Shown here in pieces: positions 2,058 to 59,460 of a DNA stretch of 64,000 nt (its first letter is position 1; every line of letters starts with the position of its first letter). Below the pieces are notes generated by a model. That model saw only the letters and a program-made list of their open reading frames with translations. It had not been told where the DNA came from and made no database searches. The stretch is from Octopus bimaculoides (taxonomy: Eukaryota), in NCBI RefSeq assembly GCF_001194135.2, contig NC_068984.1, positions 61,695,633 through 61,759,632 of the forward strand. Direction: 5' to 3'. The translations under genes and the position numbers were made by a program.

Positions 2058-2138
2058 TAGTCATAATTGCTTCAAAGTTGGGTACAAGGCCTGCAATGTT
2101 ATTGAAGGTGAATAGTCGCTTACATCGATTCCAGATTT

Positions 2139-2898
2139 AAAAGTGATTTAAAACCGGAAATGGAGGCTCTAATCTGTGCTGCCCAAGAACAGGCACTAAG
2201 AACAAGCTACATGAAATACAGAGTAGACAAGACAGCAGAAAGTGATAAGAGCAGAATCTGCAGACAAAATGGTGAAAAAGTATGGCATATTACCAGCCAA
2301 TATACGCCACTAGCCTAGAAGGAATATAAGAGACGTCACGACAATATAGCAAGGCTTGTCCATTGGACACTTTGCAACAGGTATGGACTTGACAAAGAAA
2401 AAAATGATTGCTAGGACCACAAACCCGAAGGCATCATCCAAAATGATAAAGCAAAGATCCTGAGGGATTTTATAATTCAGTGCGACCATGAGATAGAGAA
2501 TAGGAAGCCAGACATAGTCTTAATTGAGAAAGAAAGTAAACGATGCTGGATCATAGATATAGCATGCCCAGCTGTCAACACGGTATGCGATAAGGAAGAA
2601 AGAAAAGTCGATAGATATCACCGGTTAGCTTGGGAAATGAAGCAGTTGTGGTGATGAAATAGGTAGTAGTAGTACCAATAATTGTCGGAGCCCTGGAAAC
2701 AGTGAGTAAAATTCTCGAGAGTTACACGGAACAAATAGGGGCTGCAATATGTGTGGAGCAGTTGCAGAAGACAGTACTGCTTGGAAACGCTCGAATACTC
2801 CGGAAGGTGCTCGAAGATTAAGAGGTTTTACCTTAGTTCACTGGTAGTGAACAACTGACACCATAGTACATCTCCAACATTAGAAGCTGTGTAAAGGC
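2139..2898 (+). mobile_element. R4/Dong-clade non-LTR retrotransposon, 5'-truncated 3' end (subfamily A)
   Basis: Translates KSDLKPEMEALICAAQEQALRT...SRICRQNGEKVWHITSQ...EYKRRHDNIARLVHW (degenerate CCHC finger), then RKPDIVLIEK...IIDIACP...KVDRY (restriction-like endonuclease) and PIIVGAL...LLGNARILRKVLED*. Stop at 2819-2821, short 3' UTR, (AAT)n tail. Contains stops and frameshifts. Confidence 0.88.
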
Positions 2899-14947: not shown

Positions 14948-15429
14948 TAACAACAGAACTTGCTAAGCGATAAAACCTGATTTTTATAGTGTTGGTATTG
15001 AATAAGCAATCTCAATTTATAGCAATATTCGTAGAGAGACAACAGTTTTAAATTTCTTACACCTAATTTAAAGAATGTCACGTTTTATCTGTCATACATA
15101 TCGGGTTACATTTTGACTGCTTACATTTAGAAGCTAAAATAACTAAAATATATTATCACTGGACAGATGGTTTCAGGTGTTTTTGGTAGATCGCATTATT
15201 TTAAGCATTAATTTTTATTGTATGTTATTTGGGTGTTTTGGGATAGGAACACTTAATTTAGAACACCGAATGCAGTCTTGTTTGAAAAATATGTTACCTT
15301 GTACAGGAAGAACCATTAGTTCTACTTGCACAACGTATGCGTTAGTTTCCTGTGCAACCATTGATATTAGTCGACAAACTCACTTTTCCAACATTATGAT
15401 ATATGTATGAATAGGCTCTGCTTGCGAAA

Positions 15430-15558
15430 TTCTTCTTCTTCTTCTTCTTCTTCTTCTTCTTCTTCTTCTTCTTCTTCTTCTTCTTCTTCTTCTTCTTCTT
15501 CTTCTTCTTCTTCTTCTTCTTCTTCTTCTTCTTCTTCTTCTTCTTCTTCTTCTTCTTC
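15430..15558. repeat. (TTC)43 microsatellite
   Basis: Perfect run; source of the poly-R ORF. Confidence 0.97.
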
Positions 15559-16635
15559 GTATTGTCAGTGCCGTATATAGTAAAACAAGTAAGAGACTGG
15601 ATAATGCTAATATTATTTTAACACCTCCGTTCAAATATCAGTCGCGCTGTTTTACTCTTTTCCTTCATAGTTATGTAAAATATATAGATTCAAGTACTAG
15701 TACTTGTTTCGATTTATTTAAGCGTACTCGATCCATTAAAAAGCGTTGGTTTGAACCAATGTTGGAGATAACTAGTATAAGTATTTGACAAACAATATAT
15801 CAAGTGTTCCTCATTAAATCGCTTTCGTCTCCAGAATCTTTACAAATGTTGGGATAGCTAAAGTGTTAGTTTCACTTTATAACGTGTTTTTATCTCCTTC
15901 TTGTATATCCACCTACTTCAATAACCTTTATCTACTTTCGTAAAGGAAATCATATAAAAAGCATACATCTTCACCTCTCGTCGCTTTCACTATCTGTTAC
16001 AGTAAATTCTTCCGTTGACTTTTTTTTTAATATCAGTTTTTATTAACTTTCAGGTTCTATTTAAAGTTTCTCGGCGATCGTTCAATAGGTTTATTGTTTT
16101 CTTGCAGATTGGGGTTGTCTGAAAACGGATGAACTTTTCTAAATTACGTTGTGTATCAATCAATAGAAAATCCATATATTGGAGAAATATTGATTAAAAC
16201 CATTTGCGTTCATTTAATTCAGACGCACACCATTTTATTATACGTTTTCGAGTCAACAAGCTATTTTCTCGCCGCATACATCTTGTGAGTGTCATATTTA
16301 GAGAAGGAAAATAATTAGGTTTCATACAAAAGAATATCTGTTTGATTACACGACTATGACATGAATTTGAAAGATGTGAGTGGTGCATTCAGAGTAAATA
16401 ATAGACAGTATTTCAAATTGAATGCTAATGTTACTTTGTATGTATAGAGAATATGATGTTCACATTCAGTACTTACGATAAAAATAACTTTTTTCACTTC
16501 CCAATAAGAGAATGAATGATATTGCGGTTTATGAATCTGTAATTTGCTAGCGATTATCAACACAATGCGTTTTATCACCTATATTGATAGTACGTGCCAC
16601 ACATATCTAAAACACACGCACACACATACACTCGA

Positions 16636-18580: not shown

Positions 18581-18980
18581 AAGGTGGTGAAGTGGCAGAA
18601 TCGATAGCTCACCGAGCAAAAATGCGTAGGGGCATTTTGTCCGTCTTTACGCTCTGAGCTGAAATCCCGTCGAGGATGATTTTGCCTTTCATTCGTTCGG
18701 GATCTTTCATATCTCTTTAAAATAAGTACCAGTTGAGTACCGGGGGGCTATGTAGTTGCCTTCCCCAAGACAGCTGGCCGACCAAAGCCTTGTGAGTGGA
18801 TTTAGTAGACGGAAACTGAAAGGAAGCCCGTCGTATATATGTATATGTATATGTTTGTGTGTGTGTTTGTGTGTCTGTGTATGTCCCTCACCCAACATCG
18901 CTTGACAACCGATGCTGGTGTGTTTACTTCCTCATAACCTAATGGTTCGGCAAAAGAGACGTATTACTAGGCTTAGAAAG
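18581..18980 (+). mobile_element. Chimeric SINE: family A head and core joined to the family B (CORE-type) body
   Basis: 18581-18750 is AAGGTGGTGAAGTGGCAGAATCG...TTGCCTTTCATT...AAAATAAGTACCAG. From about 18776 it reads GGCCGACCAAAGCCTTGTGAGTGGATTT...CAACATCGCTTGACAACCGATGCTGG, near-identical in layout to 47050-47290. Confidence 0.75.
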
Positions 18981-19495: not shown

Positions 19496-19612
19496 AGTAG
19501 CTGTGTGGTAAGTAGCTTGCTCACCAACCACATGGTTCCGGATTCAATACCACTGCGTGGCACCTTGGGCAAGTGTCTTCTACTATAACCTCGGGCCGAC
19601 CAAAGCCTTGTG
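19496..19612 (+). mobile_element. CORE-type tRNA-derived SINE (family B), 5' half only
   Basis: A-box-like TAGCTGTGTGG, B-box-like GGATTCAATACC and the CORE-like GCACCTTGGGCAAGTGTCTT; abruptly truncated at the mariner TIR. Confidence 0.85.
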
Positions 19613-20866
19613 TCCCAGAAAGACTTATCCATATTTAGTATTCCTCCTAAAGAATATCGGTTCAGGAAATATTGTCTACATCTTACTTAGAGATTTGCAT
19701 ATGTCTTCTGCTTATGTGTCTATTGTTTCGTTCGTCTATAACAGGTTTATAAACAAACATGGTGCCGAAAGCAAAGCGCGACCAGATTGTCGCTTTGAAA
19801 CAGTTGGACTGAGCAACAAGGACATAGCAAAACAGTTAAATATGTGCTGTGAAACAGAGTTCAATACTAGGAAATGTTATATGGAGTTCGCTACTACCTG
19901 TAGCAACGCAATTCCTGATAGGAAACAATTAATTCGTACCAAACTGTTGAAGCTGTGAAGAAGCGAATGAACCGAAATCCCCACAGGAGTGTACCAAAAA
20001 CTGCAAAACCCTTGATATTTCGAAATCGTTAATGCACAGGATATTGAAAGACGATTTAAAGCTAACTGCATATAAGAAGCAATCCCGGCAGATAATTTTA
20101 GCAGTTCCCAAGAATAAACGATTTGACAGGAGTAAAACCATGTTTGCTGAGATGAAGCGCGCCGCCGAGAAAGTGTTGATCTGGTCCGACGAGAAGAGCA
20201 TCGCAGTGGAGGCAGATACCAACAAGCAGAATGATAGGCTTTCTGTACATGATGGCGGAGACTCGCTCGAAGGTAGCAGGTGTCATTTGTGCCGTCAGAA
20301 ACCAATTTTACTCATGATGTGAGCCAAAGTTGCATCTAATGGCTCCAAGTCTCCCTTGATCTTTATCGATGCTGGTGTCAACATCAGCAGTGAAGATTTT
20401 GTGGAAGTTTTGTATGAGAAAGTGTTACCCTGGGTCACAGAAACATTTGGTGACCGTTATTTTGTCACTCAAGACAATTCTCCGCCCCACGCGTTCAATT
20501 TATCACAAAGGTGGTGCAAAGAGCTTTTCAGCTGTTCTTGGGACATGGCAATACAGCTTCCCTCAGACATCAATCCCATGGACTTTTCTATCTAGTCCAT
20601 CTTCGAGAATAATGTTTCTGCTCGCTCCTGTTGAAAGTGTCATATCTGAGTAAGCCATACTGTCTTTATGGGTCAAGTTGGATGAAGAGTCGGTACGGTG
20701 CTCATGCTACTCGGTGGCCAATCACTTGTAGGTTATAATCAAGGTGAAATATAATTACTGTAATGGAATGGCAATTTAGATTAGAACGTATGTTTCATCC
20801 TGCCACCTTAATTTTATTTTGAATGATTAAAAAATATCAATGTGTAAATCTTTCTGGGAACCCCTG
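19613..20866 (+). mobile_element. Tc1/mariner superfamily DNA transposon (maT/DD37D-like), defective
   Basis: Right TIR TAAATCTTTCTGGGAACCCCTG followed by TA; the left TIR survives as TCCCAGAAAGACTTA, lacking its outer 7 nt. Contains a frameshifted transposase. Confidence 0.85.
19759..20640 (+). pseudogene. DDD transposase pseudogene (HTH plus WSDEK / QDNSPPH / PSDINPMDFSI)
   Basis: ATG at 19759; HTH-like VGLSNKDIAKQLN; MHRILKDDLKL; catalytic motifs WSDEK, QDNSPPH and DINPMD. D2-D3 spacing is 35 here, consistent with DD37D minus a 2-residue deletion in WPPxSPDLNP (inference). Multiple stops and frameshifts. Confidence 0.85.
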
Positions 20867-20985: not shown

Positions 20986-22843
20986 CATATATTGAATTTC
21001 TCAACATTTCAAATCATATTTTTCTTTGCTAGCACATGCTATATCATTAACTGGATTTTATTTCTGAATAATGATTTCTCTAATAAACTAAAACAACTAG
21101 AACAACAAGTCTGAAAATATATCACAGTTACTTAGCAAATTATTGATGCCAGTGAAAGCCTTGATTTATTTCCTTTCCAATGGCACCAATTATACTTCAT
21201 GAATATTAAAATACTTGTTCCGGATCAGAATCACGAGGTGAGTAGTTTCACTTCACTTACATCATTAATAGTGATGGAAAAAAAAAGAAACATATATATT
21301 ACATCACTTCATATCCACTTCCTTGAATATATTTGCTTCCTACATGCATATGAAACAATGTTATTGCTTATGTAAGGCAAAACCCTACAAATTTGGTGGG
21401 ATGACTGAAGTGATATTTCTAGTTTTTCATTATTTCATTAGGATTTATATTTTATTTCAAGTAGAGACGAAAAGCAAAGATGATTGCAGTCGAATCTGAA
21501 ATCAAACTGACATTGGATATAACAAAAATAAGACGCGCAAATGGTTTCAGCCATCTACGCGTTATAAGAAACACTAATCAAAAATATTAAACACACGCAT
21601 CAGTAAAAATGAAAAAAAGGCGGCACATAGAACGATAATTCCTGTTACGTATATCCTATATGAAAAGATTCAAGATGTGAATTTAGTTTTGGAGCAAACT
21701 ATCCAAAGTGTCCGACCTATCCTTAACTGAGATAATACAATATGATTTGTCAGAGACTTTGTATAGATTGTACGTTGGCCAATTGCAATGAAGAAACATT
21801 TTTGATTAAATTCGACTGTAAATATACAAGAGTGCTTGCAATTAGGAACAGAGTTAAGAAATGATTTTAACAAGAATTATATTACGTATGGAATATCTTT
21901 CTTACTTTGTAAGTAGCACAAAGTTATTTTTCCCCCAATACTTTCAATAATAATGTATCACTGTAGCTTGAATCTTTGTGGCTGTACATAATTGCGTGAT
22001 ATGATATTCGAAGATATTGTTGACAAAAATCGAACAGCATAAATATAAAGACAAAATACACTATAGACAGAAGTAATTGTGAATGTTCACTGGCTTGGGG
22101 AGAGTGGTAAAATCTAGCTGACAATTTGTCATTTTAAAATAGTCATTTCTTTGTACATTACTAACATCTTTGCATTGCATTTGTGGGAATCATGTTGAAA
22201 TATCCTGTCTCTTTCTCCATCTAATTTCGCCTCTTCTCCACCTCTCATAATTGGCTTCCCTTATAAAGTTGTGGAAGTTTAGAAAAACACTTGCAGAGTG
22301 CAGTACCATCTAAAAGCAAGGACATATTATTCAACATTTGTCCGCGAGCACACTAGTCAAGGGACTCACTTGCAATCTATGTATGCTGTAGTTTGCTGTC
22401 AATAAACACTATATTCCCGTTTGCATTGCTTTGTTTGGGAGTCTATAAAACTGTTAATCCTAGGAATATAGAAAATGAGAAACCATCTCATAAAAATTCT
22501 GTGAAATTTCACTCTTGTGAAAATTCCGTGACAAGAGTCGTGTATGCCAAAGATATCCTCAATTATAGTTCGTGGATAAAATGGTGCAAGAAGTAAATAC
22601 TAAACAATTTCAAAAATGTTCTAATGACAGACAAAATTTCAATAATGATATTTCATTTTACTTTTAAATTGTTCACTTTGACTCATGTTCAGATGAATCG
22701 TGATGGTATAAGTAATGGTTAAAGAAAATAGTGAAATGACATTGTAATTATTAATTAGGAAACGTATTTGCATTAAAACAAAAAGTTACATTCAGCATTA
22801 TACACATACAGGCGTCTAATTCTCTTTTTTCTTATCTGACACG

Positions 22844-22945
<102 letters not shown>

Positions 22946-23913
22946 ACTCATCTTTAGCACATACACACACATATCAGAAGCTGGGTTATCCGTATTGAAA
23001 ATATTCGGTTATTTGAAGATTTATTTGATCAGTTATAAAAGACATACGTACGTTCATTTCCAACAAAGTAATACTATACTTTTTGTATACCTTGAGTTCT
23101 GTTTCTTTCAGATAGTATTTCAGTTACATTACCTCATCCCTGAAACTTCTAATCCAATTACATTTTAAATATTTCCTTGGAATTTCTATGTGTCAGCTGA
23201 GCTTCGTCAGTTTTTATTAATCCTTTTTATTTAACGGTAGATGATTTTTAATAGGAGGTACTATTGCAGTTCGCCTCTCGACCCCACAGATGTTCACAAA
23301 TTAATTTTTGAACAGAAACGCATTACAATCTGTGAGCTATAAATCTTAATCTTGATAAGCAAAAGTTTATTTCGCTATCCTTAGTTGCAAGATATCATTC
23401 TCAAAACTCGAAGATGGTGTACTCTTCTTTACTCTCTCATTCCTATATTATATAATTTGGTTTTAGTTCTTTCACCCTCAAATTTAGGATTTCTTTACCC
23501 TTAATCATTAATGCTATATTTGTATATAACAACTTATCCATTACAGGTATTTATTCATCTCCAACATCCAGGAGTACGTTTTACAGGTTTCTAAGCCAGA
23601 TAATAAGATTCCCCGCCGCCTTACTCTTCCTTTTATTCCCTTATTAGTCAACAGTGTAGTTCCAAATTTATTATCATTATAGTTTCTCCCCAATGTTTAT
23701 CTCATTCGTATTTTCACATATATTTCATATTCAAATATTTGTTTCTCTTCGTCTCTCGTATCCGTTATTACAACCTTGTGAAGCGTTTGTCTGTCTAGCC
23801 TTAGGTTACACGCATAATTTAAGCTCTTTTTCTTTTCATTTCCTTAAATCTATTAATTGAAGACCGTCATCCCCATTCACTTTGTAGCATTTCTATCATC
23901 ATAAATTAGTAGA

Positions 23914-34975: not shown

Positions 34976-37210
34976 CACTGGTCAACAGCCAATTTTCATC
35001 AGGGATATTATATAGTGTTTTATGTGTAGTTTTGTCTGCAGATTTCAAAAATGTAATCGGTTTCCTTCTATCAGGCACAATTTTTCTGATGAGATAAGAG
35101 AGGTATATAACTACCATCAGCAGTATCGCTACACGCAAACGTCTGATACAGGTAAATTCTGACTTTCGTTTTATAACTATTTGTATTCATTTTGTAATTA
35201 AATGTTTTCATAATCTTTTCTTTTCATAAATTTTACTTTCTGTTTTAGGTGGCAAGTCATCATCATCATCAAATTCTAATCAGGATGTCAAGGCATTGCA
35301 AGAACAGTCCTGATATATTTTGTTATGTCTGTGGTTCATTTACCACCAAAGCTCAGCAACGTACCGTCACAAGTGAAATCAAGAGGATCTACCAGTTATG
35401 CTTTGGCTGCTCTCTCAAGATAAGAATTGGGCGCCGCACATTATCTGCTCAGCTTGTGCAAATAGACTAAGGGGTTGGCTAAATAAGAGGAAGAGAGCAA
35501 TACCGTTTGCAATACATATCATATGGAGAGAGCCAAAGCATCATTTCATGGACTGTTATTTCTGCAACGTTAATGTATGTGGGTTTACTATAAATACCAA
35601 GCATAAGATTGTGTATCCCAACTTGGAATCAGCAAGACGACCAGTACCACACAACGATGATGATCTTACTATTCCAATACCATCAGGAAATGGCCTTCAG
35701 ATGTCTGACGAAAATGCATTTCCTGAAGATAATACTACTAGTGTGGAAGACACCGAAGCGGATGTACATTTCACGATTGAAAATGAAGACGTACCACAGA
35801 AATTTTCTCAGGGAGAGTTAAATGATTTAGTCAGAGACTTGTCATTGTCGAAGGATAAAGCTGAACTATAAGCATCTCGCTTACAAGAAAAGTGTCTGCT
35901 TAAGAAAGATATTTGTATTACTCATTTCAGGAAGAGAAATAGGGATCTGACTTCACTTCATGCTTTTCTGTTGATGGGCCACTTTGTTTCAGTAATAACA
36001 CTGATGAGTTATTTCGCTGTTTGTTCCAAGAACATGTTCCAGTTGAATGGCGCTTATTCATTGATTCATGTAAGAGAAGCCTCAAGGCAGTACTACTACA
36101 CAACGGCAATAAGAAACCATCCATTCTCATAGGACATTCAGTGCACATAAAGGAGTGTTATGAAAACATGCAAGTACTCCTCAATGCTATAAAGTATACA
36201 AACTACAGCTGGAAAATATGTGGAGACTTGAAGGTGATTGGTATGTTGATGGGAATGCAATCTGGGTTCCCGAAATAGTGTTGCTTTTTATGGTTATGGG
36301 ACACTCGTGCAACTAACAATCACTATGTACAATCAGAGTAGCCTATGCAAAAATCATATGAGCCGGGAGTTTCTCGCGTGCAGAGTAAGCCACTTTTAAT
36401 CCCAGAAAATGTTCTTATTATCTCGCTTCACATAAAGCTTGGCGTCATGAAACAATTCGTGAAGACACTTGCCAGGAAGGACAAATTTCCAAAAGTCCCC
36501 GAAGCAAAACTGAAGGAGGGCGTATTCATAGGTCCTCAGATAAAAGAACTCCTGAAGGACAACCACTTCCTCACAGCACTGGAGGAGATTGAGCTTAAAG
36601 CATGGGAATGACTCTGTGAAAATTTCTTAGGCAACAAGAGATCTCTAGAGTTCAGAAATGGAGTGAAATGTCCTCTAGACTCCTACACTGCAATGGGCTG
36701 TCGGACGTCACAAAAAGTCTATTTCCTTGATTTACATCTGGACGTTTTTGAAGAGAACCATGGCGCAGTGTTTGATGAGGAAGGGGAACGCTTTCATCAA
36801 GATATTGCATGGATAGAACAACCATATCAAGGATTTTGGAATGCAAGAATGTTAGCTGACTACTGTTGGATGTCATACAGGGGTGAACCTGAGACAAAAC
36901 ACCATCGAAAGTCCAAATCCCAGCGATCTTAAGTTGTTATGCATTTGAGTGTATTCTAACTTATTTGTACACAATAATTTTAATTTTGTATAATAAAAAA
37001 CCATGAAATTATCGTATCTTGCATTGAATATGCTTTATATAGACATGCTTTATGTATTATATAAGTTAAAACAGCAGGTATAATTAACATGAAAATGTGA
37101 CCTGATCGAGGAACTCGGACTTCAGATTCGTAATCAGCATCACAAATTAACCCAGAAAAGTCAATCAGCAACTCTGATGATTTAAAATAGTTTCATTTTG
37201 TTGACCAGTG
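34976..37210 (+). mobile_element. Chapaev3-type DNA transposon, full length, defective
   Basis: TAA|CACTGGTCAACA ... TGTTGACCAGTG|TAA: 12-bp perfect TIR, 3-bp TWA TSD and CAC...GTG termini, plus degenerate subterminal inverted repeats. 2235 bp. Confidence 0.88.
35285..36932 (+). pseudogene. Chapaev-family transposase pseudogene
   Basis: MSRHCKNSPDIFCYVCG...WAPHIICSAC...WREPKHHFMDCYFC (N-terminal Zn finger); LNDLVRDLSLSKDKAEL; WRLFIDS...LKAVLLHNGN; CGDLKVIGMLMG; LHIKLG; EGVFIGPQI; DEEGERFHQDI; MLADYCW. In-frame stops at about 36276, 36339 and 36609 plus frameshifts. A GT-AG 5'-UTR intron lies at 35152-35248. Confidence 0.9.
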
Positions 37211-39719
37211 TAATAATCCTGTGAAACTACTTGTTATACTCATATTTCCTGTACTTAGAGGACATTTAATTTTTATCGCAGGGTATATAGCTTTTATCTG
37301 TCTGTATAAAACTGATTGAATGTAATTTACGACCAACTCACTTTTGCATTTTGGAAAAGTTATTCTAGTTATATTTTCGTTACATTATAAGTTATATGTC
37401 CGTTTTGTTAGATCATCGTAATAATTTACATTGTTCTTAAAGCTATTTACATGCTTAATGAAATAGATACCTATTTCACTGAACTCGCTGCTATATGGAA
37501 GCGTATTTTTCACTTAAGTAAATCATTAGATTCCTTCTAAAGAAGCAAACCAAAGTTAGTTTCCATGAATCCGTATGTTTCTTAGGAAAAGCCGCGATAG
37601 AAGAAAGGTTCTACATCTAGTTTTATTATTTCCCTGGAGTTCAAAATTATTTAAAATTTATAGTATACTGAATATCTTGAAAAGTTTTCAACGATACTGT
37701 CTTTCCTTCCACACCTTTATATGAAAAAGAACTTTACTATTAGTTAGGTGCCTTTTAGTAATTAATAACACCGTTAAAGCTTCGTCTGTGTGGAATTTTA
37801 TGACACATTGCCCTATGATTGGCGTCTGTAAACTTTTCCTTGTCTCTTCATGCAATTCCTTTGAAACTAATCATTCTTTTTGCTAGTGTACTTTTCAGCT
37901 AAAATATGTGAGTCTAATTGTATCCGAGAACTTACGCCTCTTGTAAATTTATTTGCTTGAGTTATTATTATTTTTTTTACTGCGGTTTACATCTGATTTT
38001 GTCACATTTTTTCCATCTGATTCTTGCATTACTCTAACCATATTTTCTTCCTGTCATTCTCATTTTTATCCATATAACAGCTATTGCTGGTCTTGAAGTA
38101 AAAAGTAGAAGTATTGCTGTCGTTTGAGCATCAATCAGAAGACTCAATGAATACATATTTTCTTTCTTTCCTCACATCCATATGAGAATATTTGAATACC
38201 GACACTTTTGAATAACATCTGTAATGTGCAGCACTAAATATCTTTACCGCAATGCTTGCTCAGAAGTTACAGCAATATAATAACAATCATATTCTTCTTC
38301 AAAATACATAAGTTCTATGACGACTAATCTCCACTCAATAAATACACACAATATCTAACGTATTTTTATTAGTATATTTTGAAAAAATGAAATAAATATA
38401 AAAACACAATTGGTTGATGTGCTTTCAAGTTACATTTTCCCTCTGATATTCCAGCAATTATAAAAACAACACTAATAATGTATTTACTGCAGAATGGCAC
38501 AACTGCTTATTAATGCATTTGACATCATATGTTTATGTATAAAAAGAATATTCGTATAAAATGTAAACAACCGAGTTGGAACTTGAAGATACAGAGATAT
38601 TTAAAATCAAATTCTTATGTTGTTTGTTACGACTAATCTATAGGTTTCTTTTTCTCCAAAATACCAGAACTGAAATTGTCATTGTATGATATGAACACAT
38701 CATTTTGAGGTTGATTTTTCACAACGTTTTATACTTTTAAAGATTTACTCCAATGTTTTTCTTCATCCGTCTAATTTTAAAACAATAGGCAATGTTTAAT
38801 TTCAGTGAAACTGTTCTGCATTGTAATTCCGAGAATAAAAAACAATAACTTTAGCTGTTTAGATGGAAAATTATCGAATATTTCTTGTTGAATGAAAAAT
38901 CTATTGTTTTAAGACACATCATTGTTAAATTTGTTTCCTTCACAAAGATTTATTGTTTGGGAAGAGAATTCAACTTTCCTTTGAACTTCCAGGATTACGG
39001 ACAATTTTTATCATCAGAAATTATTAGGAATTGTTGTATGAGAATATATGTACTATCAGACATTTTAATATTATTTTATACGAATACATTTTCCATAAAA
39101 ATGATCATGCATGTTGTTAGAAAATTTACGTGAGATTATTTAGTTTAACCCTGTCACATATATGCACTTTACATGTCTTAAATATCGAAAGATTCTAGAG
39201 TTTGAGCTTGAAGGTAATTTAGCTGGTATTTTATATAGATTGTTGGAAATAGTTTTGACGAAAATCATTGAATTATTTTTTGTGTACGTTAACAAATATT
39301 GTACAGAATACATATCAGGATATTCTAAACATAAAAAAAAATTATCTATGATGCTATCGTACAACTGTTATATATTATAGATCATTTGTCGTTGTAATGG
39401 CAATATTATAGGCAATTTTTTGAATATAAGTTAACTAAGCATACAGTTACAGTGATAATCACAACATCGTGCATAATCAATACATAGTTTCATTGTTGCA
39501 TAAAGTATGCATGTAAAGAATAAAACAGTCGATGCAATTTTATACAATTAGGATGATATAAAGTGTTGAATCCTGTCAACTCGAACTCAAAAGAGAATTG
39601 CAAAGAGAACACAGCGTTTCTTATTCTGAATGCAAAAAAATGCAATGAAGCCTAACAAAGTGGTGCTTGAAGGAAGAGTTTCTGTCCGCACAGCAGAGAT
39701 TACAAGCTATACATGTAAA

Positions 39720-39751
39720 CGCACACACACACACACACACACACGCACACA

Positions 39752-39812
<61 letters not shown>

Positions 39813-39870
39813 CCGCACACACACAAGCACACACAAACACAACACACACCCACTTACACACACACAGATG
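39720..39870. repeat. (CA)n-rich microsatellite
   Basis: Direct run. Confidence 0.95.
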
Positions 39871-40624
39871 CGCACGCGCGAATCACGCGTTCAGAAAAAA
39901 GCAAAAGAAAACAGAAAACCGAGACAATTGAGGGAACAAAAGACAAAGTGTGTTAGTTTCAGGCTCAAGAAAAATGGAAAAGTCTCTGACGTTTCGGGCC
40001 TACGCTCTTCGACAGGAAGCAATATATACGTGCATATGTGTGTGTGTTTGTGTATGTGTGTGTGCGTGTGTGTGCGTGTGTGTGTATAATGATTGTGATT
40101 ATTTATGACAAAAATTACTAATACATATAATTATAATAACAATATTAATTGAAGGTATAAACCCAAAATACGTGAAATATCTCTGAATAAATAATGTACT
40201 CCTTACAGTAAAATGTAACCAAAACTGCTAGAATTTATTTTAATATAAATAAACATTTTAAAATCACGATTCAACTGTAATACCAGTGGAGGTGACTATA
40301 AGATCAGAATTCAATTCGATTTAAAAAGTAACGCTATTACCTTTAACTGAATAACAATGCAAGAAGCTTGTTTGAATTAGTTCATTTTGAAAACGCCGTA
40401 ATTGATGGACTCTTGATGAAATTGCATCGACTAGGATGCATAATTTCATACAGAGCAATGTGCAGTTGATGCAGTAGATACAAGTGTTGGCTATTTTTAT
40501 TTATGCTGTGGAAAACCTTTTAGTAAAAAGTTTTGGGATGTGAATAAATCTCCACTCGCCTCTTGGAGTATATATGGACATACGCATCACATGTGTCTGT
40601 GCGTGTGCGTGTATATGTGCTTGC

Positions 40625-42918
40625 ATGTCTGAGCTATAGCATCTTGTCTCATCGGTAGATTATACCATGATGACATTTTCGGACAGTTGTTTATGATGTA
40701 GGTGATATCTTCGGCGTTAACTCCACAAAGTCTGCATCGAATATCCCATTTTGCTGCCATTCTGTCCCCTTTGTGCATCAGGTATTTGGCTAATATTTCC
40801 TGTTCCTTGACTGCAAACGCATACCCTTCAAAGCGTGTGGTAGTAATCCGGTTGTTGATCAATGTAATCGGGTTGTTGCTTTGATGATAAATGTTACTAC
40901 CATCCTGGATCTTTCTGCAAACATATTCATGCATGATCTTCTGCTGACATATTCTCATCCTCTCATTGATGATATATTGCGGTAGAGTCGTCCGACTTCA
41001 TTGGGCATGTATTTAGGTTTATCAGACAAGGAATCTGCTAAAAGATCTGCTTTCCAACTCTCATTATGTTATCATCCTCATGTATGCAAATTTGGTCAAG
41101 GGATACACCTCCACACTTGGTGGTTAAAAGATGTTGCCGAAGGTATATGATACGATATCCAAAGGCAGTCTGGATTGATGTTAAGATTCTTCCCCCCTCC
41201 TACGGTTTTCGTTTTAGGTAGTGCGGTCTAAGTCACTGTTGATGTGAAAATTATCTGTGCTGGTTAGTATCTTCTGGGTTTTCACATCAATAGCTTGGAT
41301 CTCCTCATGCATCCAATCAAGCAGCCCATATCCTGATATGAGTACTGCCATTACAAACACGTTGCAGGACAGTGTTTCATTGAATGCAGAGAGTTCTGAA
41401 ATTCAAAGTTTCTTTATTCGGTTGTTATATACTTTAGTGATACATATCTTGTTACTAGTGCCATCATAAGCTATGTTTTCATTCACTCCTGGATACCTGT
41501 AACATTCCTCATCAAAAATGGGGGAAACAGTTACATTATTGATGGAGACACTGCTAGTCTGGTTTACTGTTTCCATTCTTACACAACCATATAGCAACAT
41601 TTATCCTGACCAAACTCCAACCCTATATCTTTCGAGAATGTTGTAACCAGGTCAAGGCCCATTTTTCATTTCCTGCATATTCTTTGCATATAGTTTCAAG
41701 TCAGCCACATAGAGACTGTGTAATTGTGGTATTTCTGTTACCTTGCGAACCGGTGAGATACCCTTCAGACTTCGTCAACATGAATCACAGAGAGGTTGAC
41801 CCTTTGGAATATACCTCTGCGATACTGTATTCTGTCAGTGATAAACAATAACACTTTGCATTTAATTTCCACGACGGAGTCAGGTATTTAATTTCCACGA
41901 TGACGTCAGGTGAATTATGGCTTTGACAATGCTCACTGGAAATTTAGCAAGACGAAGGGCTTCTAGCATCCATGAGTAGGAAAAAGAGTGAAAGGCTTTC
42001 TTGCAGTCAGTCACATTAAAACTAGGTTTATCCTATGCTCTCGCACCACTGACATTAGAATTTTGTTTATTAACGATTGCTTGGCACATCCATGTTCTGT
42101 TGTGAGGATGTTATTATTTTCCGAATGGTCTTAAAGAAAACAATATCAACATGCTGTATATATTCTCTCCTGTACCTTCTGACTTGCTGTAATTTTTTGG
42201 TATGTAGGTGGTTCTGCTTTTGGAAGTCACTTTCATCTCTGCCAGAGCAAACCATGTGGTATGTTACTATTTCCACTGAAAGCTTGCTGGCATATGTTGG
42301 TAAGTTATGGCTTATTGTACCAGTATCCAACAATCAAGACTTTTCCATATGCTTTTCCATTCTCAAGATTGTTAATTATAGTTACAAGGGTATCACGATC
42401 AATGCTATATATCTTCGATGTATGCAGGGCAATAACTTCTTCGAAATTCTTTCAAACACAAAGCATCTCGGTTAAACTCCATCTTTTCACTCTATAATTT
42501 CTACCAAAAGAAATCTGTCTTCTCGTGAATGAGCTTCTATGATGTTTTCTGTTTCTCCTCTCATGTCTTTGTACACTGCTGCCTTGTTCCGGTTAAACTT
42601 TTTGTTTACTGTTTTTTTCCCCGGTTATTCTCTTCTGATGTCGGAGTTTCCAACTGACGGCTTTTAGCTCTTTTTTGTGGATGATTAGTTTTAAATGAGT
42701 ATTCACTTTTTGCTTTCTCCAAACATCATTTCCAACTCCTTCGCTTTTCGTTGGCGAGATAAAGTGAGTTTCTTGTTTGCAAGCAATAAGCATTGTCGCA
42801 TGGGTGAAGGTTTTTCGTAAATAAGTCAGCTTTTTTTGTCTTCAAAACCCATGATAGTACCTTCTTCGTTGTTTCGGGTTTATTTACTTTTTGAATGTCG
42901 TCCTGTATTGCTTTGCGG
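40625..42918 (-). mobile_element. R4/Dong-clade non-LTR retrotransposon ORF remnant (RT plus zinc finger)
   Basis: Minus-strand pieces: CKKAF..SWMLEALRLAK; RRGIFQ; LYVADLKLYAK (YxDD site, 41700-41711); FSKDIGLEFGQDKC; YRYPGV; FEGYAFAVKEQEI; CRLCGVNAEDITYIINNCPKMSSWYNLPMRQD. Many frameshifts; the 5' side runs into a gap. Confidence 0.85.
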
Positions 42919-45270: not shown

Positions 45271-45614
45271 GTGTGACCAGTTCATTTGATCATACAACTG
45301 GAATGCTCATCCAAGAAACAAATGAAGATCCATTTCCTTTAGCTTTTGTTTACTAATACACATCAGCAAATGAGCCAATGAGGTAATCTCCGTTTGGTTT
45401 TTCAATTTATTAGAAATAACAACCAAATCCCCCTCACACTATGCTTTAATATTTATTAAATGAAAGACACATTAAATAATGCCGTTCTGCATCTTCAGTA
45501 AAAATACAGAATGGCTCATTTTAGACTGACCAGGGTTTACACTGACAGGCATTTATTTGTTGCAACCATTGCGAGTGTACCGCCAATACAACTTCCCACG
45601 AATCACTTTCTTAC

Positions 45615-45745
45615 GCATGTTGTGCCTAGATTTAACGCACCTCTTTTTTTAGGGATGACACCCTTTCTTGCAAATAATTTACTGTATCCATCTCTGTTTT
45701 CAAGATCGCCTTCAGAGTATTCAAAATCTCCTGCAATGAAATGGC
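45615..45745 (-). CDS. Internal coding exon of an unidentified host gene (phase 1 to phase 0): xHFIAGDFEYSEGDLENRDGYSKLFARKGVIPKKRGALNLGTTC
   Basis: A ~50-nt polypyrimidine tract ending TTTTTTTTTATCTACACACAG|GC, donor ATGC|GTAAGA, 131 nt = 2 + 43 codons with an open frame and non-repetitive, protein-like composition. Confidence 0.72.
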
Positions 45746-45852
45746 CTGTGTGTAGATAAAAAAAAACAGATAAAAACAAACACATAAAAGTAAACAAATA
45801 AAAGCTTCACAAAATATATGTAAAATATATATACTTTAAATTTAATTTTTTA

Positions 45853-46026
45853 TTTTTATTAGTTTCAGTCATTTGACTGGAGCCATGCTGGAGCACCCCC
45901 TTTAGTCGAGCAAATCGATCCCAGAACTTATTCTATCGGTCTCTGTTGCCGAACCGCTAAGTGACGGGGATGTAAACATATCAGCATTGGTTGTCAAGCG
46001 ATGTTGGGGTGACAGACACAGACACA

Positions 46027-46069
<43 letters not shown>

Positions 46070-46356
46070 NNNNNNNNNNNNNNNNNNNNNNNNNNNNNNN
46101 NNNNNNNNNNNNNNNNNNNNNNNNNNNNNNNNNNNNNNNNNNNNNNNNNNNNNNNNNNNNNNNNNNNNNNNNNNNNNNNNNNNNATATATATACGAGCAG
46201 CTTCTTTCAGTTTCCATGAACCAAATCCACTCACAAGGCTTTGGTCGCTCCGAGGCTATAGTAGAAGACACTTGCCCAAGGTGCTACGCAGTGGGATTGA
46301 ACCCAGAACCATGTGGTTGGTAAGCAAGCTACTTACCACACAGCCACTCCTGCGCC
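45853..46356 (-). mobile_element. CORE-type tRNA-derived SINE (family B), full length
   Basis: Reverse complement begins GGCGCAGGAGTGGCTGTGTGGTAAGTAGCTTGC..., has GCACCTTGGGCAAGTGTCTT and an internal (TG/TA)n, and ends GACTGAAACTAATAAAAA. Confidence 0.92.
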
Positions 46357-46945: not shown

Positions 46946-47374
46946 AGCACAGGAGTGGCTGAGTGGTAAGTAGCTTGCCTTCCAACAACATGGTTCCGGG
47001 TTGAGTCCCACTGCGTGGCACCTTGGATAAGTGTCTTCTATTATAGCCTCGGGCCGACCAAAGCCTTGTGAGTGGATTTGGTAGTCAGAAGCTGAAAGAA
47101 TCTCATCGTATATATATGTATATGTATATATATGTGTGTGTGTGTGTGTGTGCGTGTGTGTGTGTGTGTGTGTGTCTGTGTTTGTCCCCCCAACATCGCT
47201 TGACAACCGATGCTGGTGTGTCTACGCCCCCGTCACTTAACAGTTCAGCAAAATGGACCGATAGAATAACTACTAGACCTACAAAGGATAAGTTCTGGGG
47301 TCGATTTGCTCGACTAAAGGCGGTGCTCCAGCATGGCCGCAGTCAAACGACTGAAACAAGTAAAGAGTAAAAGA
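46946..47374 (+). mobile_element. CORE-type tRNA-derived SINE (family B), full length
   Basis: AGCACAGGAGTGGCTGAGTGGTAAG...GGTTGAGTCCC...GCACCTTGGATAAGTGTCTT...GACTGAAACAAGTAAAGAGTAAAAGAG. Confidence 0.92.
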
Positions 47375-51626: not shown

Positions 51627-51899
<273 letters not shown>

Positions 51900-51985: not shown

Positions 51986-53490
51986 CAAAAAGTATCAACA
52001 GTATCAAAAGCAATCTTATGCAAAATAAATAAAAAAACAGACTAAAACAAAAGCAACAACATCAAATAGTTAGAATACAAACGATGGTTCTTTTTCTTAC
52101 TTTCAGGTAGTCAATAATCTCTCACCTTCCCCCTTTGAATCGCTGAAAAATTTAGTTGTACCCATACTAAAATGCAGCTTCTTTGAAGAAGTTATCGGCA
52201 TGTAACTCTTATTCAGATTAGTATATCGATGAATATGTACAAATTTAAACTTGCAAATTATGATGTAAGATATTACATACACAGAATAGCGATTTGCTGT
52301 AAATCCTATTTCAATGTCCTCCACCTTTATTTTCCGCTCTTTGTGTTGTCCATAGAATAATGGTAATTATAACAAGAATTTGTAATTAACTTTAGAACAA
52401 TTAATATTCTTATAATTAAATACATTTCTAATTATAATTAATATAATTATAATTAATAAAATCGCATGTTTAGCGGTTTCTATCAATGTTCTTATAGATT
52501 GGTATTATTGTGTTAGATATAACTAATTAATCGTATTTATTCATATGGCTCACATTAGCTGACCCATGTAAACTATCTTCTAAAAGTTTTGAAGGCGTCC
52601 GCCACAAAAGAAAGAGATAAAAAGGATAAAAATGTACACGAGTACTTAAATGAACATGAAACAATCTACGAAGTGATATAAAGCTTAAATAAGATAACCA
52701 AATGTTGAATTTCTTCTAAATATTTAGGAGGACAAATAACAGATGCTCTATGTCTCGATGACTTCATTATATCAAAATTACTTAGCATTATATTTTAGTC
52801 TCAGTTGACGAATTGGCTATTGTAGCATTCGTTTTATAACTTAGCCTAGTGACCTGTCAGTTATCGACTTGCAATATACGAACAAAGAGATCAATCAATA
52901 TTTAGGTTCATCATATATTGAATTATATGGCATATTAATCGATATAGAGTACTCAATTAATGTAGTTTCACACAAAGCCAATGCATATGAAAACATCTAA
53001 AATTAATAAATATAAAATACAATATGTACCATGCCTATGTTTGTCTGTAAGTGCTGGAGTGAAAATCAGTTTATACTATTGTAAATACAAACGAAAATGC
53101 ACTTGGAGATATCTCCAATCATTTCTCGTGTCTGAAGGCAGTTTTACTGGTGATCACACTAAGTGTTAAAATAGCAAGTTATCAAATTCGAAACTGAACG
53201 TTAGGTAACTAATAATAATGCCTATTGTTTTAATAATTACGATATATTGTGAAATATTTCCCCTTTTATTTAGTTATAATGAATAACAACGTAATTATCA
53301 TGCACATTATATATTACATTCTCAGCAGTAATCCTGTTTTGTTATTAAATATAAATTAACTGCCATAAATATTTTTGGTTAGAAAATATTATAGTGATTA
53401 ATTTAATTAAACAAATCCCCATTCTTTTAAAAGCGTCGCATGTTATTCTCTATTTAAAATTTCATAAAAGAATGTGTTCTCAGCATTCCT

Positions 53491-53578
53491 TTCTTCTTCT
53501 TCTTCTTCTTCTTCTTCTTCTTCTTCTTCTTCTTCTTCTTCTTCTTCTTCTTCTTCTTCTTCTTCTTCTTCTTCTTCT

Positions 53579-53612
<34 letters not shown>
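53491..53612. repeat. (TTC)n(TTTC)n compound microsatellite
   Basis: Direct run. Confidence 0.95.
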
Positions 53613-53614
<2 letters not shown>

Positions 53615-53658
53615 TGAAATTTTTACCGCTGTCGAAGCTATTGCCGTTCTATTAATAA

Positions 53659-55262
53659 TCTATATATATAAAAATGGGAATGTGTGTCTGTATGTCTGTC
53701 TGTCTGTCTGTGTGAATCCCTAAAACTCGAGAACTACGCAACCAATTTCATTCAAATTTTACAGATGCCTTACTTAGGGTTCCAGTTGTGTTTTAGTCAA
53801 AAAAAATTTTAACTTCTTGCAGAGTTCGAGCCCACGGCAACATAATATCTCCTCCACTATTTAAGTATTACGTGTCAAAAGTGAAACAAAAACACTCATG
53901 TCAAATACTTTCACTTTTAAAATGAAACTATTCTACTAACTGAAACAATCACATTTTGATACTGTAATGACAGATACTTTCAGAGAGAGAGAGAAAGAGA
54001 GAAAGAGAGAGAGAGAAAGANNNNNNNNNNNNNNNNNNNNNNNNNNNNNNNNNNNNNNNNNNNNNNNNNNNNNNNNNNNNNNNNNNNNNNNNNNNNNNNN
54101 NNNNNNNNNNNNNNNNNNNNNNNNNNNNNNNNNNNNNNNNNNNNNNNNNNNNNNNNNNNNNNNNNNNNNNNNNNNNNNNNNNNNNNNNNNNNNNNNNNNN
54201 NNNNNNNNNNNNNNNNNNNNNNNNNNNNNNNNNNNNNNNNNNNNNNNNNNNNNNNNNNNNNNNNNNNNNNNNNNNNNNNNNNNNNNNNNNNNNNNNNNNN
54301 NNNNNNNNNNNNNNNNNNNNNNNNNNNNNNNNNNNNNNNNNNNNNNNNNNNNNNNNNNNNNNNNNNNNNNNNNNNNNNNNNNNNNNNNNNNNNNNNNNNN
54401 NNNNNNNNNNNNNNNNNNNNNNNNNNNNNNNNNNNNNNNNNNNNNNNNNNNNNNNNNNNNNNNNNNNNNNNNNNNNNNNNNNNNNNNNNNNNNNNNNNNN
54501 NNNNNNNNNNNNNNNNNNNNNNNNNNNNNNNNNNNNNNNNNNNNNNNNNNNNNNNNNNNNNNNNNNNNNNNNNNNNNNNNNNNNNNNNNNNNNNNNNNNN
54601 NNNNNNNNNNNNNNNNNNNNNNNNNNNNNNNNNNNNNNNNNNNNNNNNNNNNNNNNNNNNNNNNNNNNNNNNNNNNNNNNNNNNNNNNNNNNNNNNNNNN
54701 NNNNNNNNNNNNNNNNNNNNNNNNNNNNNNNNNNNNNNNNNNNNNNNNNNNNNNNNNNNNNNNNNNNNNNNNNNNNNNNNNNNNNNNNNNNNNNNNNNNN
54801 NNNNNNNNNNNNNNNNNNNNNNNNNNNNNNNNNNNNNNNNNNNNNNNNNNNNNNNNNNNNNNNNNNNNNNNNNNNNNNNNNNNNNNNNNNNNNNNNNNNN
54901 NNNNNNNNNNNNNNNNNNNNNNNNNNNNNNNNNNNNGTCAAGTAAATGAGACGCATCTTTGCCTCCACTGATTCACTTGCAAAGTGTTGAGTAAAATTAT
55001 TTCGTTGCAGATCTCCTTTGGGTCTTTTTATTATCACTGCGACACACATAGTCCCCAGTTGGTAACATTGATTTCAAGGCCCTCCTAGATGAGAGACTGG
55101 CATTCCACTTAATGCTATGTTCCATGCTGGCATGGATTGGAGAGTTATTAATGTAGAAATATGGTATCGTAGCTACTAACAGTTGAGGGTTGCGTAGTCT
55201 AGACGGCGTTTTTAGATTTCATTATTCTCTTTAACCCGGGCAAAGCCGGGTATTTCTGCTAG
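53659..55262 (+). mobile_element. Non-autonomous Helitron (separate family), spanning gap 54021-54937
   Basis: A|TCTATATATATAAAAATGG... 5' end; 3' hairpin ACCCGG-GCAAAG-CCGGGT (55234-55251) then ATTTCTG-CTAG|T. Inserted at an A|T site with no TSD. Linking the two ends across the gap is an inference. Confidence 0.75.
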
Positions 55263-58539: not shown

Positions 58540-59460
58540 GAAGCTACGCGTTGAATGCATAAAACAGCATGGCCGCTGCTTTTCCTATTCCCAAATAATG
58601 GAGGAAGGCAAATATCAAGGAAAAGGAAGCAATAATCTAGTCAGAAGTACTGCATCAGGATCACGAAAGTATGTCAAGAGATGTAGAGCTGGTATCCAGG
58701 GGAGCCTGAATAGAATGTGACGTCCTCAAAAGAAAGATCATATGAAAAAACCTATGTAGACTTTAGGCATCATTCTTCCTCTGCAGTTGGTGTATTACAC
58801 CTCTAAAGGACGCTAATGAAACTTGCATAGATGGAATATGAAGGTGAACCAGCTGTATAGACTGCGAGGAAAGGTACACTGCGGCACACATCTTGTTACG
58901 GCGCAAACAACACTTACCCAAGGGTAATACAAGTGGCGCCATGGCAAGGTCATAACACGATGCACGCTCACATTTTAGAACAGGAAAAACACATGAAACA
59001 CCAACAGCAAGGAAAGCAACGCCGGCAATAAAGTTCTTGAAGAGAGGAAAAATGACTATAAAGAAGTTTTTCCATGTCGACCAGATAACCTTGAGCCCGA
59101 ATATCGTTATGTGTTCTGAAAAGACAAAAAAAAAAAAGAAAAAATAATAATAATCGAATAATAATTGGGATCAAGCTTACGTAACCTAGAAAGAAGGGTA
59201 TAGCGTAGCCTGTGAATGGAAGCGTGCCTATTACCAGAGACTTTTTGAGAAATGCAGGGATACATTATGAATATCTACAATCGAGTTTGGCTGTAAGGGA
59301 TTGTCTGTCTACAAAAATGCTTACTACCATTAGAATAAGTGAAAACGAGCGAAAGGTATCTGTGCACAGTCTATTTGAGGCAGCAGGAAGGTCTTCTTGC
59401 TGGTCATTGAGCATGAGGCATGAGCAAAATCTTCATGTTGGTAGTACTTGAAACTGAGCG
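58540..59460 (+). mobile_element. HERO-clade (R2-related, RLE) non-LTR retrotransposon 3' remnant
   Basis: RDVELVSRGA*IECDVLKRKII*KNL...SCIDCEERYTAAHILL...KG..YKWRHGKV (CxxC-H finger plus QGRYxWRH motif); IEFGCKG; SVHSLFEAAGRSSCWSL (EAAERxSxWLW). Many stops. Confidence 0.75.

Follow-up and report, generated by a model that had tools for sequence, protein, structure and literature searches.

The segment at 45641..45745 on the minus strand has the best composite exon score in the 64-kb window (the whole stretch of DNA that was analysed), and our tentative reading, to which we give a little less than an even chance, is that the locus is a genuine spliced exon, unannotated and lineage-restricted, of a transcript from the minus strand, and probably coding. 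Its 105 nt comprise 2 nt, 34 codons (HFIAGDFEYSEGDLENRDGYSKLFARKGVIPKKR) and 1 nt, a symmetric phase 1-1 arrangement, bordered by an acceptor of 7.3 bits and a donor of 10.1 bits. We observed splice-like signals at both ends, an open frame between them, a coding-like amino acid composition and compatibility in phase with a second exon-like candidate elsewhere in the window. The locus had first been drawn, in an earlier note on this DNA, as an exon at 45615..45745; this 131-nt feature lies on the minus strand, and the sequence, coordinates and translation given in the note were all reproduced.

The two forms share an acceptor and differ in their donor. On the minus strand, the acceptor reads ...tgtttgtttttatctgtttttttttatctacacacag/GCCATTTC, with cacag at the end of a long pyrimidine tract; tract and AG together occupy 45746..45790, and their in-frame translation is hydrophobic (MCLFLSVFFYLHTG). 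From there, the frame of the 131-nt form consists of 2 nt (GC) followed by 43 codons, which encode HFIAGDFEYSEGDLENRDGYSKLFARKGVIPKKRGALNLGTTC; it opens with HFIAG, runs to KKRGALNLGTTC and ends in GALNLGTTC. The first-drawn donor, ACATGC/gtaaga (TGC/GTAAGA, 45609..45614), scored 2.7 bits and is followed 9 nt on by an in-frame TGA (45603..45605). A stronger donor, AAAAGAG/gtgcgt (GAG/GTGCGT, 45635..45640), which scored 10.1 bits, sits 26 nt inside the 131-nt form, and the 105-nt exon that it defines ends in ...GVIPKKR. Use of this internal donor would place GALNLGTTC in the intron, so that the choice between two donors only 26 nt apart settles whether this would-be motif is exonic at all. The locus thus has what a spliceosomal internal coding exon calls for, namely a polypyrimidine tract with an AG acceptor, a near-consensus GT donor and an open frame between them. 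The description of its splice signals as textbook holds for the acceptor, which is strong, but not for the first-drawn donor, which is only moderate.

These scores, in bits, come from our own consensus-derived log-odds matrices, which were built on the general features of metazoan splice sites, with no training on cephalopods, and the thresholds applied to them were partly post hoc. Across both strands of the window, only 9 acceptors scored at least 7.3 bits. Donors of at least 10.1 bits numbered 19 in the window, and those of at least 2.7 bits numbered 1264. From the densities of such sites, about 31 chance splice-site pairs would be expected for the 131-nt form. The expectation for acceptor (at least 7.3 bits) and donor (at least 10.1 bits) pairs lying 60-400 nt apart is 0.47, before an open frame or a particular composition is required.

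We scored all AG...GT pairs enclosing an open frame, on both strands, with a composite that sums the acceptor score, the donor score and an amino acid composition log-odds (generic proteome versus the window's own six-frame translation). The 105-nt form reached 24.1, the highest value in the window, followed by 19.3 for a shorter variant of a candidate at 58.9 kb and then by values of at most 14.8. When the window was reversed without complementing it, which retains the T-runs and microsatellites and is thus the stricter control for low complexity, the composite maximum was 15.2. Markov-3 shuffles gave window maxima of 15.5 ± 2.1 and never reached 24.1 (0 of 60), and Markov-5 shuffles gave 16.9 ± 2.6 and reached it once in 60, with a value of 26. 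Exon status is favoured because the composite exceeds the reversed control, all 60 of the Markov-3 shuffles and 59 of the 60 Markov-5 shuffles. We conclude that the 105-nt form is exon-like beyond chance, roughly at the 1-2% level per window, which is short of proof. The 131-nt form with its own borders scored 18.3, a value matched by 5 of 60 Markov-3 and 17 of 60 Markov-5 shuffles (8-28%), and its signal is within chance.

A rival possibility is that the locus is a chance pseudo-exon, in which, within AT-rich intergenic or intronic DNA, a T-rich run ending in AG happens to precede a brief open stretch and any of numerous GT sites, with nothing expressed or selected. We consider this unlikely, though with an appreciable chance of being right. 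Stop-free segments of 50 codons or more number 391 in the window, the 131-nt form is readily matched both in the shuffles and in the number of site pairs expected, and even the score of the 105-nt form was surpassed by one Markov-5 shuffle. With tens of thousands of such windows in a multi-billion-base genome, a rate of 1-2% per window would yield many false exons, and neither homologues nor partner exons were found. Weighing against a pseudo-exon, fewer than 2% of windows would be expected to hold a chance match to the 105-nt form, both its composition and its codon-position bias resemble those of coding sequence, and the same strand carries an equally strong second candidate whose phase is compatible.

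The earlier note had described the frame as open and complex. It is indeed open, and the amino acid composition of the peptide ranked 12th among the window's 659 stop-free segments (top 2%), the higher ranks all being taken by microsatellite or transposable element (TE)-like ORFs. G occupied the first codon position in 16 of the 43 codons and the third position in 2 of 43. The 131-nt stretch is single-copy within the window and lies outside the adjacent SINE-like element. On the opposite strand, an 82-codon ORF (45511-45759, plus strand) covers the whole candidate exon, so the stretch is poor in stops on both strands; the composition score of this ORF was 2.5, which is unremarkable. A profile of observed over expected CpG showed nothing distinctive at the locus.

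A second exon-like candidate, at 58918..59115 of the minus strand, lies 13 kb upstream of 45641..45745. It is 198 nt long, also in phase 1-1, and its translation, HITIFGLKVIWSTWKNFFIVIFPLFKNFIAGVAFLAVGVSCVFPVLKCERASCYDLAMAPLVLPL, is hydrophobic; the acceptor (tttttttttttttgtcttttcag, 9.9 bits) is the best in the window and the donor, GG/gtaagt, scored 8.9 bits. The claim that the first-drawn locus was the only exon in 64 kb does not survive this candidate, which lies on the same strand and beats it on acceptor plus donor. When open candidates were ranked by splice sums alone, the two led with 18.8 (the highest sum, that of 58918..59115) and 17.4, followed by 14.9 and 12.1, and the reversed control did not exceed 13.9. 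Shuffling produced a runner-up scoring 17.4 or more in 0 of 50 Markov-3 and 3 of 50 Markov-5 sequences, and only 0.12 chance splice-site pairs would be expected for the candidate at 58.9 kb.

Both minus-strand candidates have the form of 2 nt, whole codons and 1 nt, and they join in frame through G/GC, a Gly codon, into a product reading ...APLVLPL-G-HFIAGDFEY..., in which Kyte-Doolittle windows above 1.6 span residues 17-50. That the two best splice-flanked candidates share strand, phase 1-1 and an in-frame join also speaks for exon status. The likeliest form of the exon would be the 105-nt phase 1-1 version, spliced through the GAG/gtgcgt donor, with a predicted contribution of about 35 residues in which an acidic block (DFEYSEGDLENRDG) precedes a basic one (KLFARKGVIPKKR). 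The exon may splice in frame to the hydrophobic 198-nt candidate with the junction ...LVLPL-G-HFIAG..., in which case the joined residues could form a charged, probably disordered loop or tail beside the membrane-embedded segment of a small membrane-associated protein. Site usage, the pairing of the two exons and any role of the product are what we infer here, and roles as a peptide-precursor module, a prohormone or a protease active site do not form part of this proposal.

The upstream candidate could also be read in other ways. Its frame stays open for 50 codons beyond the donor, within a 135-codon ORF at 58766..59170 whose product is hydrophobic and transmembrane-like, and it could consequently be a terminal exon or another element. 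The region 58760..59270 is not SINE-like, and 58918..59115 had no recognised match in Pfam, NCBIfam or the PDB. Within the window, chaining yielded neither a start exon nor a downstream exon. The lack of a database relative, of an annotated neighbouring exon and of a chainable start or downstream exon counts against a real exon.

These same results, together with splice-signal evidence that outweighs the protein evidence and a peptide that appears in no protein collection, could instead indicate a real spliced exon that is non-coding, part of an lncRNA or UTR, whose open frame and motif-like strings are incidental. We regard this as doubtful, with a small chance of being correct: the amino acid composition is in the top 2%, the asymmetry of G between first and third codon positions would have to be coincidental, and one compatible open frame is kept by both candidates.

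Database searches with the translation of the tentatively preferred, lineage-restricted exon were almost uniformly empty. The 43/44-residue peptide matched no Pfam family and no PDB sequence (phmmer) at E ≤ 10. In searches of Pfam, NCBIfam and the PDB with the peptide, a 60-residue ORF that extends it upstream and the joined product, nothing rose beyond noise (DUF6629, E = 0.06). A word-indexed search of 5.8 billion proteins contained no protein sharing three 5-mers with the peptide, exact look-ups of the 60-residue ORF, of a 64-residue ORF and of two TE ORFs in protein collections gave no record, and a literature search on the peptide strings and SINE strings gave no match. One metagenome match, a bacterial LacI-family regulator containing FIAGDFEY..GD, was set aside as a chance 8-mer beyond which the similarity stops, and another metagenome scan returned nothing. 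We also rejected a reading of GDFE as a degenerate form of the GDFN of LINE endonucleases, as Pfam did not support it and the frames on either side did not continue it.

In search of a host gene, the protein-like stop-free segments of each strand were concatenated and used as queries, and no database protein was returned; these queries left out 58760..59270, so the upstream candidate exon stands outside the large-database comparison. A 49-residue TE piece used as a positive control was also without a match, which leaves the coverage of this organism by the databases unverified. Rfam and tRNA scans of the window gave no matches.

The exception among the protein searches was an exhaustive HMMER scan of 1.84 billion representatives, which returned a single match, P0001 (E = 7.9e-5), a bacterial FG-GAP/Calx-beta/RTX repeat protein. 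A 21-residue core, GDFEYSEGDLENRDGYSKLFA (AGDFEYSEGDLENRDGYSKLFA), aligns to GDFSFTAGDL-NRDGYPELIA with 13 of 21 residues identical. In this pattern, GDF-x-[FY]-x-x-GD-L-x-N-R-DGY-x-x-L, the peptide resembles the core of the FG-GAP repeat (the integrin-alpha-type beta-propeller repeat) in P0001. Unlike such repeats, it carries an extra residue in the DxNxDG loop, is present as a single copy where several tandem blades would be expected, and has no match to Pfam FG-GAP or FG-GAP_3. The E value rests on four tandem repeats summed, a gap of one residue has to be opened in the presumptive Ca-binding loop, and P0001 is the only FG-GAP protein among the 1.84 billion to have scored; we attribute the match to chance.

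This match is nonetheless the one piece of protein evidence for a further reading, that the locus is a decayed fragment of older coding sequence (a TE protein, a processed pseudogene or an FG-GAP-type repeat) with accidental splice-like borders. Decayed TE ORFs and SINEs abound in the window, which would suit such an origin, but the match reaches significance only through the summing of the repeats, the insertion falls in the loop that would bind Ca, the family profile is blind to the peptide, and the adjacent frames hold no continuing coding sequence. We consider this reading very improbable.

The earlier note had favoured a secreted-peptide precursor, citing a signal peptide, an acidic propeptide, KR cleavage and a Cys-containing mature peptide. 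With neuropeptide, hormone and toxin prepropeptides, the locus does share an acidic stretch and a tribasic KKR site with one Cys beyond it, as well as a hydrophobic N terminus if an upstream ATG is used. It differs from them in that the signal-like segment lies outside the exon and in that it shows no amidation signal, repeats or family resemblance. No signal peptide is found within the exon borders, and HFIAG is not one: a hydrophobic start requires the in-frame ATG at 45785, which precedes the acceptor. From this ATG the frame remains open through the pyrimidine tract and reads MCLFLSVFFYLHTG-HFIAG...VRK to the stop. The result is an unspliced, ATG-initiated small ORF of 60 codons at 45603..45785 on the minus strand (MCLFLSVFFYLHTGHFIAGDFEYSEGDLENRDGYSKLFARKGVIPKKRGALNLGTTCVRK, then a stop). 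A single-sequence AlphaFold2 model of this ORF placed a helix at residues 3-19, with the remainder predicted as disordered and at low confidence.

A lineage-specific secreted peptide precursor could accordingly take the form of a multi-exon gene or of this ORF (MCLFLSVFFYL...IAG, an acidic pro-region, KKR and a Cys peptide), and several observations are compatible with it. An in-frame ATG and a hydrophobic helix precede the exon; AATAAA occurs about 45 nt past the stop and TATATATA about 45 nt before the ATG; and, among the window's 114 ATG ORFs of at least 50 residues, this is the sole one with a hydrophobic N terminus, an acidic stretch, a dibasic site and a later Cys, by layout criteria that were post hoc, having been picked after the sequence was seen. 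Set against these are how common the individual features are and how the layout depends on leaving the locus unspliced. Of the window's ATG ORFs, 20% have hydrophobic N termini, as T-rich DNA tends to encode them, and 37% of 43-residue pieces from its random ORFs contain a dibasic pair. No relative was found in any database. The signal-like segment is the same DNA as the polypyrimidine tract, which makes the signal-peptide and internal-exon readings mutually exclusive, and the layout is lost if the better donor or an upstream exon is used. The Kozak context, with T at -3, is poor, the ORF is absent from protein records, and processing could rely on one KKR site, with no repeated peptide, no amidation Gly and no match to a known family.

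The precursor-like features of the candidate exon are thus all compositional and common in the window's random ORFs, and we judge a secreted precursor to be improbable. We likewise see little chance that the locus encodes a lineage-specific small secreted or membrane-anchored peptide, whether through the 60-codon ORF or through a precursor assembled from 58918..59115 and 45641..45745; such a peptide gene could have gone unannotated because it has no homologues and sits among repeats.

The alternative put forward for GALNLGTTC was a divergent Cys box of the USP deubiquitinases (peptidase C19, UCH), with the catalytic Cys as the last codon of the 131-nt exon and the remaining domain downstream. 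The pattern G-x-x-N-L-G-x-T-C occurs once in the window's six frames, at the candidate exon, and the first-drawn donor falls directly after the Cys codon in phase 0. The exon end shares N-L-G-x-T-C and a Gly three residues upstream with USP Cys boxes; no hydrophobic residue follows its first Gly, T-C is not preceded by the usual Asn, and, relative to the PROSITE Cys-box pattern, it deviates at position 2 (A, not hydrophobic) and at position 7 (T, not N/A/S/M). As noted above, the stronger donor would make the string intronic.

A USP should also be recognisable by a UCH profile or USP structure, by a C-[YFW]-x-N-[SAC]-x-[LIVM]-Q continuation, and by a His box (H-x-G-...-G-H-Y) with QQD, and none of these was found in the window. 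At E ≤ 10, neither Pfam UCH/UCH_1 nor any USP chain in the PDB matched the peptide, no USP appeared among the results of the 1.84-billion-protein HMMER scan, and Pfam UCH had no match in the translated segments of the minus strand between 64 kb and 37.9 kb. It had been proposed as a check that the next exon must begin with Y/F-x-N; no such peptide follows any acceptor in the window, and a continuing exon would have to lie outside it or in an N gap. Neither [YFW]-x-N-[SAC]-x-[LIVMF]-[QH] nor the His box (...GHY) nor QQD was present in the 45.6 kb downstream or in the rest of the window, on both strands; no remainder of the domain was found in the 45 kb that follow the exon. The Cys-box reading is effectively refuted within the window, and we find it barely credible for the locus as a whole.

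Of the original description as an orphan exon, the exon part thus holds up better than the functions attached to it: the locus has the best composite in the window, a coding-like composition and a phase-compatible second candidate, but the precursor and USP readings are unsupported. As an unannotated exon, it resembles the orphan or cassette exons of large invertebrate genomes in its AG acceptor and polypyrimidine tract, GT donor, short symmetric phase 1-1 form, absence of homologues and long repeat-filled flanks, and differs from them in that its exon status is statistical only. Gene models of Octopus bimaculoides are fragmented and incomplete (PMC5534336), so an unannotated exon would be unremarkable if this species is the source. 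If real, the locus would be a further taxon-restricted coding exon that is missing from the annotation of a large invertebrate genome rich in repeats, which is unsurprising in itself but would aid gene models and the catalogue of orphan genes; it would become more notable only given RNA or peptide data for a secreted bioactive product. The likenesses to KKR, NLGxTC and GDF..GD.N.DG within a 43-residue translation also counsel caution, as they do not amount to functional evidence.

The surrounding DNA has the character of AT-rich draft eukaryotic sequence, with a G+C content of about 33-34%, many microsatellites and SINE copies, and 10 N gaps totalling 2409 bases, the largest at 54021-54936. 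Two SINE-like copies of about 0.4-0.5 kb, at 45847-46355 and 46947-47372, are inverted relative to each other, 87-88% complementary and separated by about 590 bp, and they carry (CA)n/(TG)n tails; one of them begins no more than roughly 100 bp away from the candidate exon. Part of a third copy lies near 18840-18960 (about 18.9 kb). ARAGORN detected no tRNA-like part in the SINE-like copies.

Several other regions of the window have the appearance of decayed mobile elements. At 35377-36929 (plus strand), four long stop-free segments of 164, 111, 89 and 106 codons have a protein-like composition and include a Cys/His-rich stretch (...CSACANRLRGW...WREPKHHFMDCYFC...); the region looks like a decayed DNA-transposon ORF. 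It had no Pfam match, and the ORF is absent from records. Clustered ORFs of 90-148 codons occupy both strands of 19512-20650, where the plus-strand frames resemble Tc1/mariner transposases by eye and comparison with Pfam gave only noise (DUF4214, E = 0.015). On the minus strand, 40523-42650 contains frameshifted pieces like a LINE reverse transcriptase with a Cys-rich C-terminal tail, for which Pfam RVT_1 reached only E = 0.072. Three adjoining protein-like stop-free segments at 2112-2844 (plus strand; ...IDIACPAVNTVCDKEERKV...) resemble the tail of a retroelement ORF and had no match in Pfam. The longest "ORFs" of the window are tri- and dinucleotide microsatellites that translate as poly-L, poly-E, poly-K, poly-Y, (ER)n and (HT)n, and long microsatellites lie at 15400-15620, 22780-22970, 39700-39870, 51630-51830 and 53450-53620.
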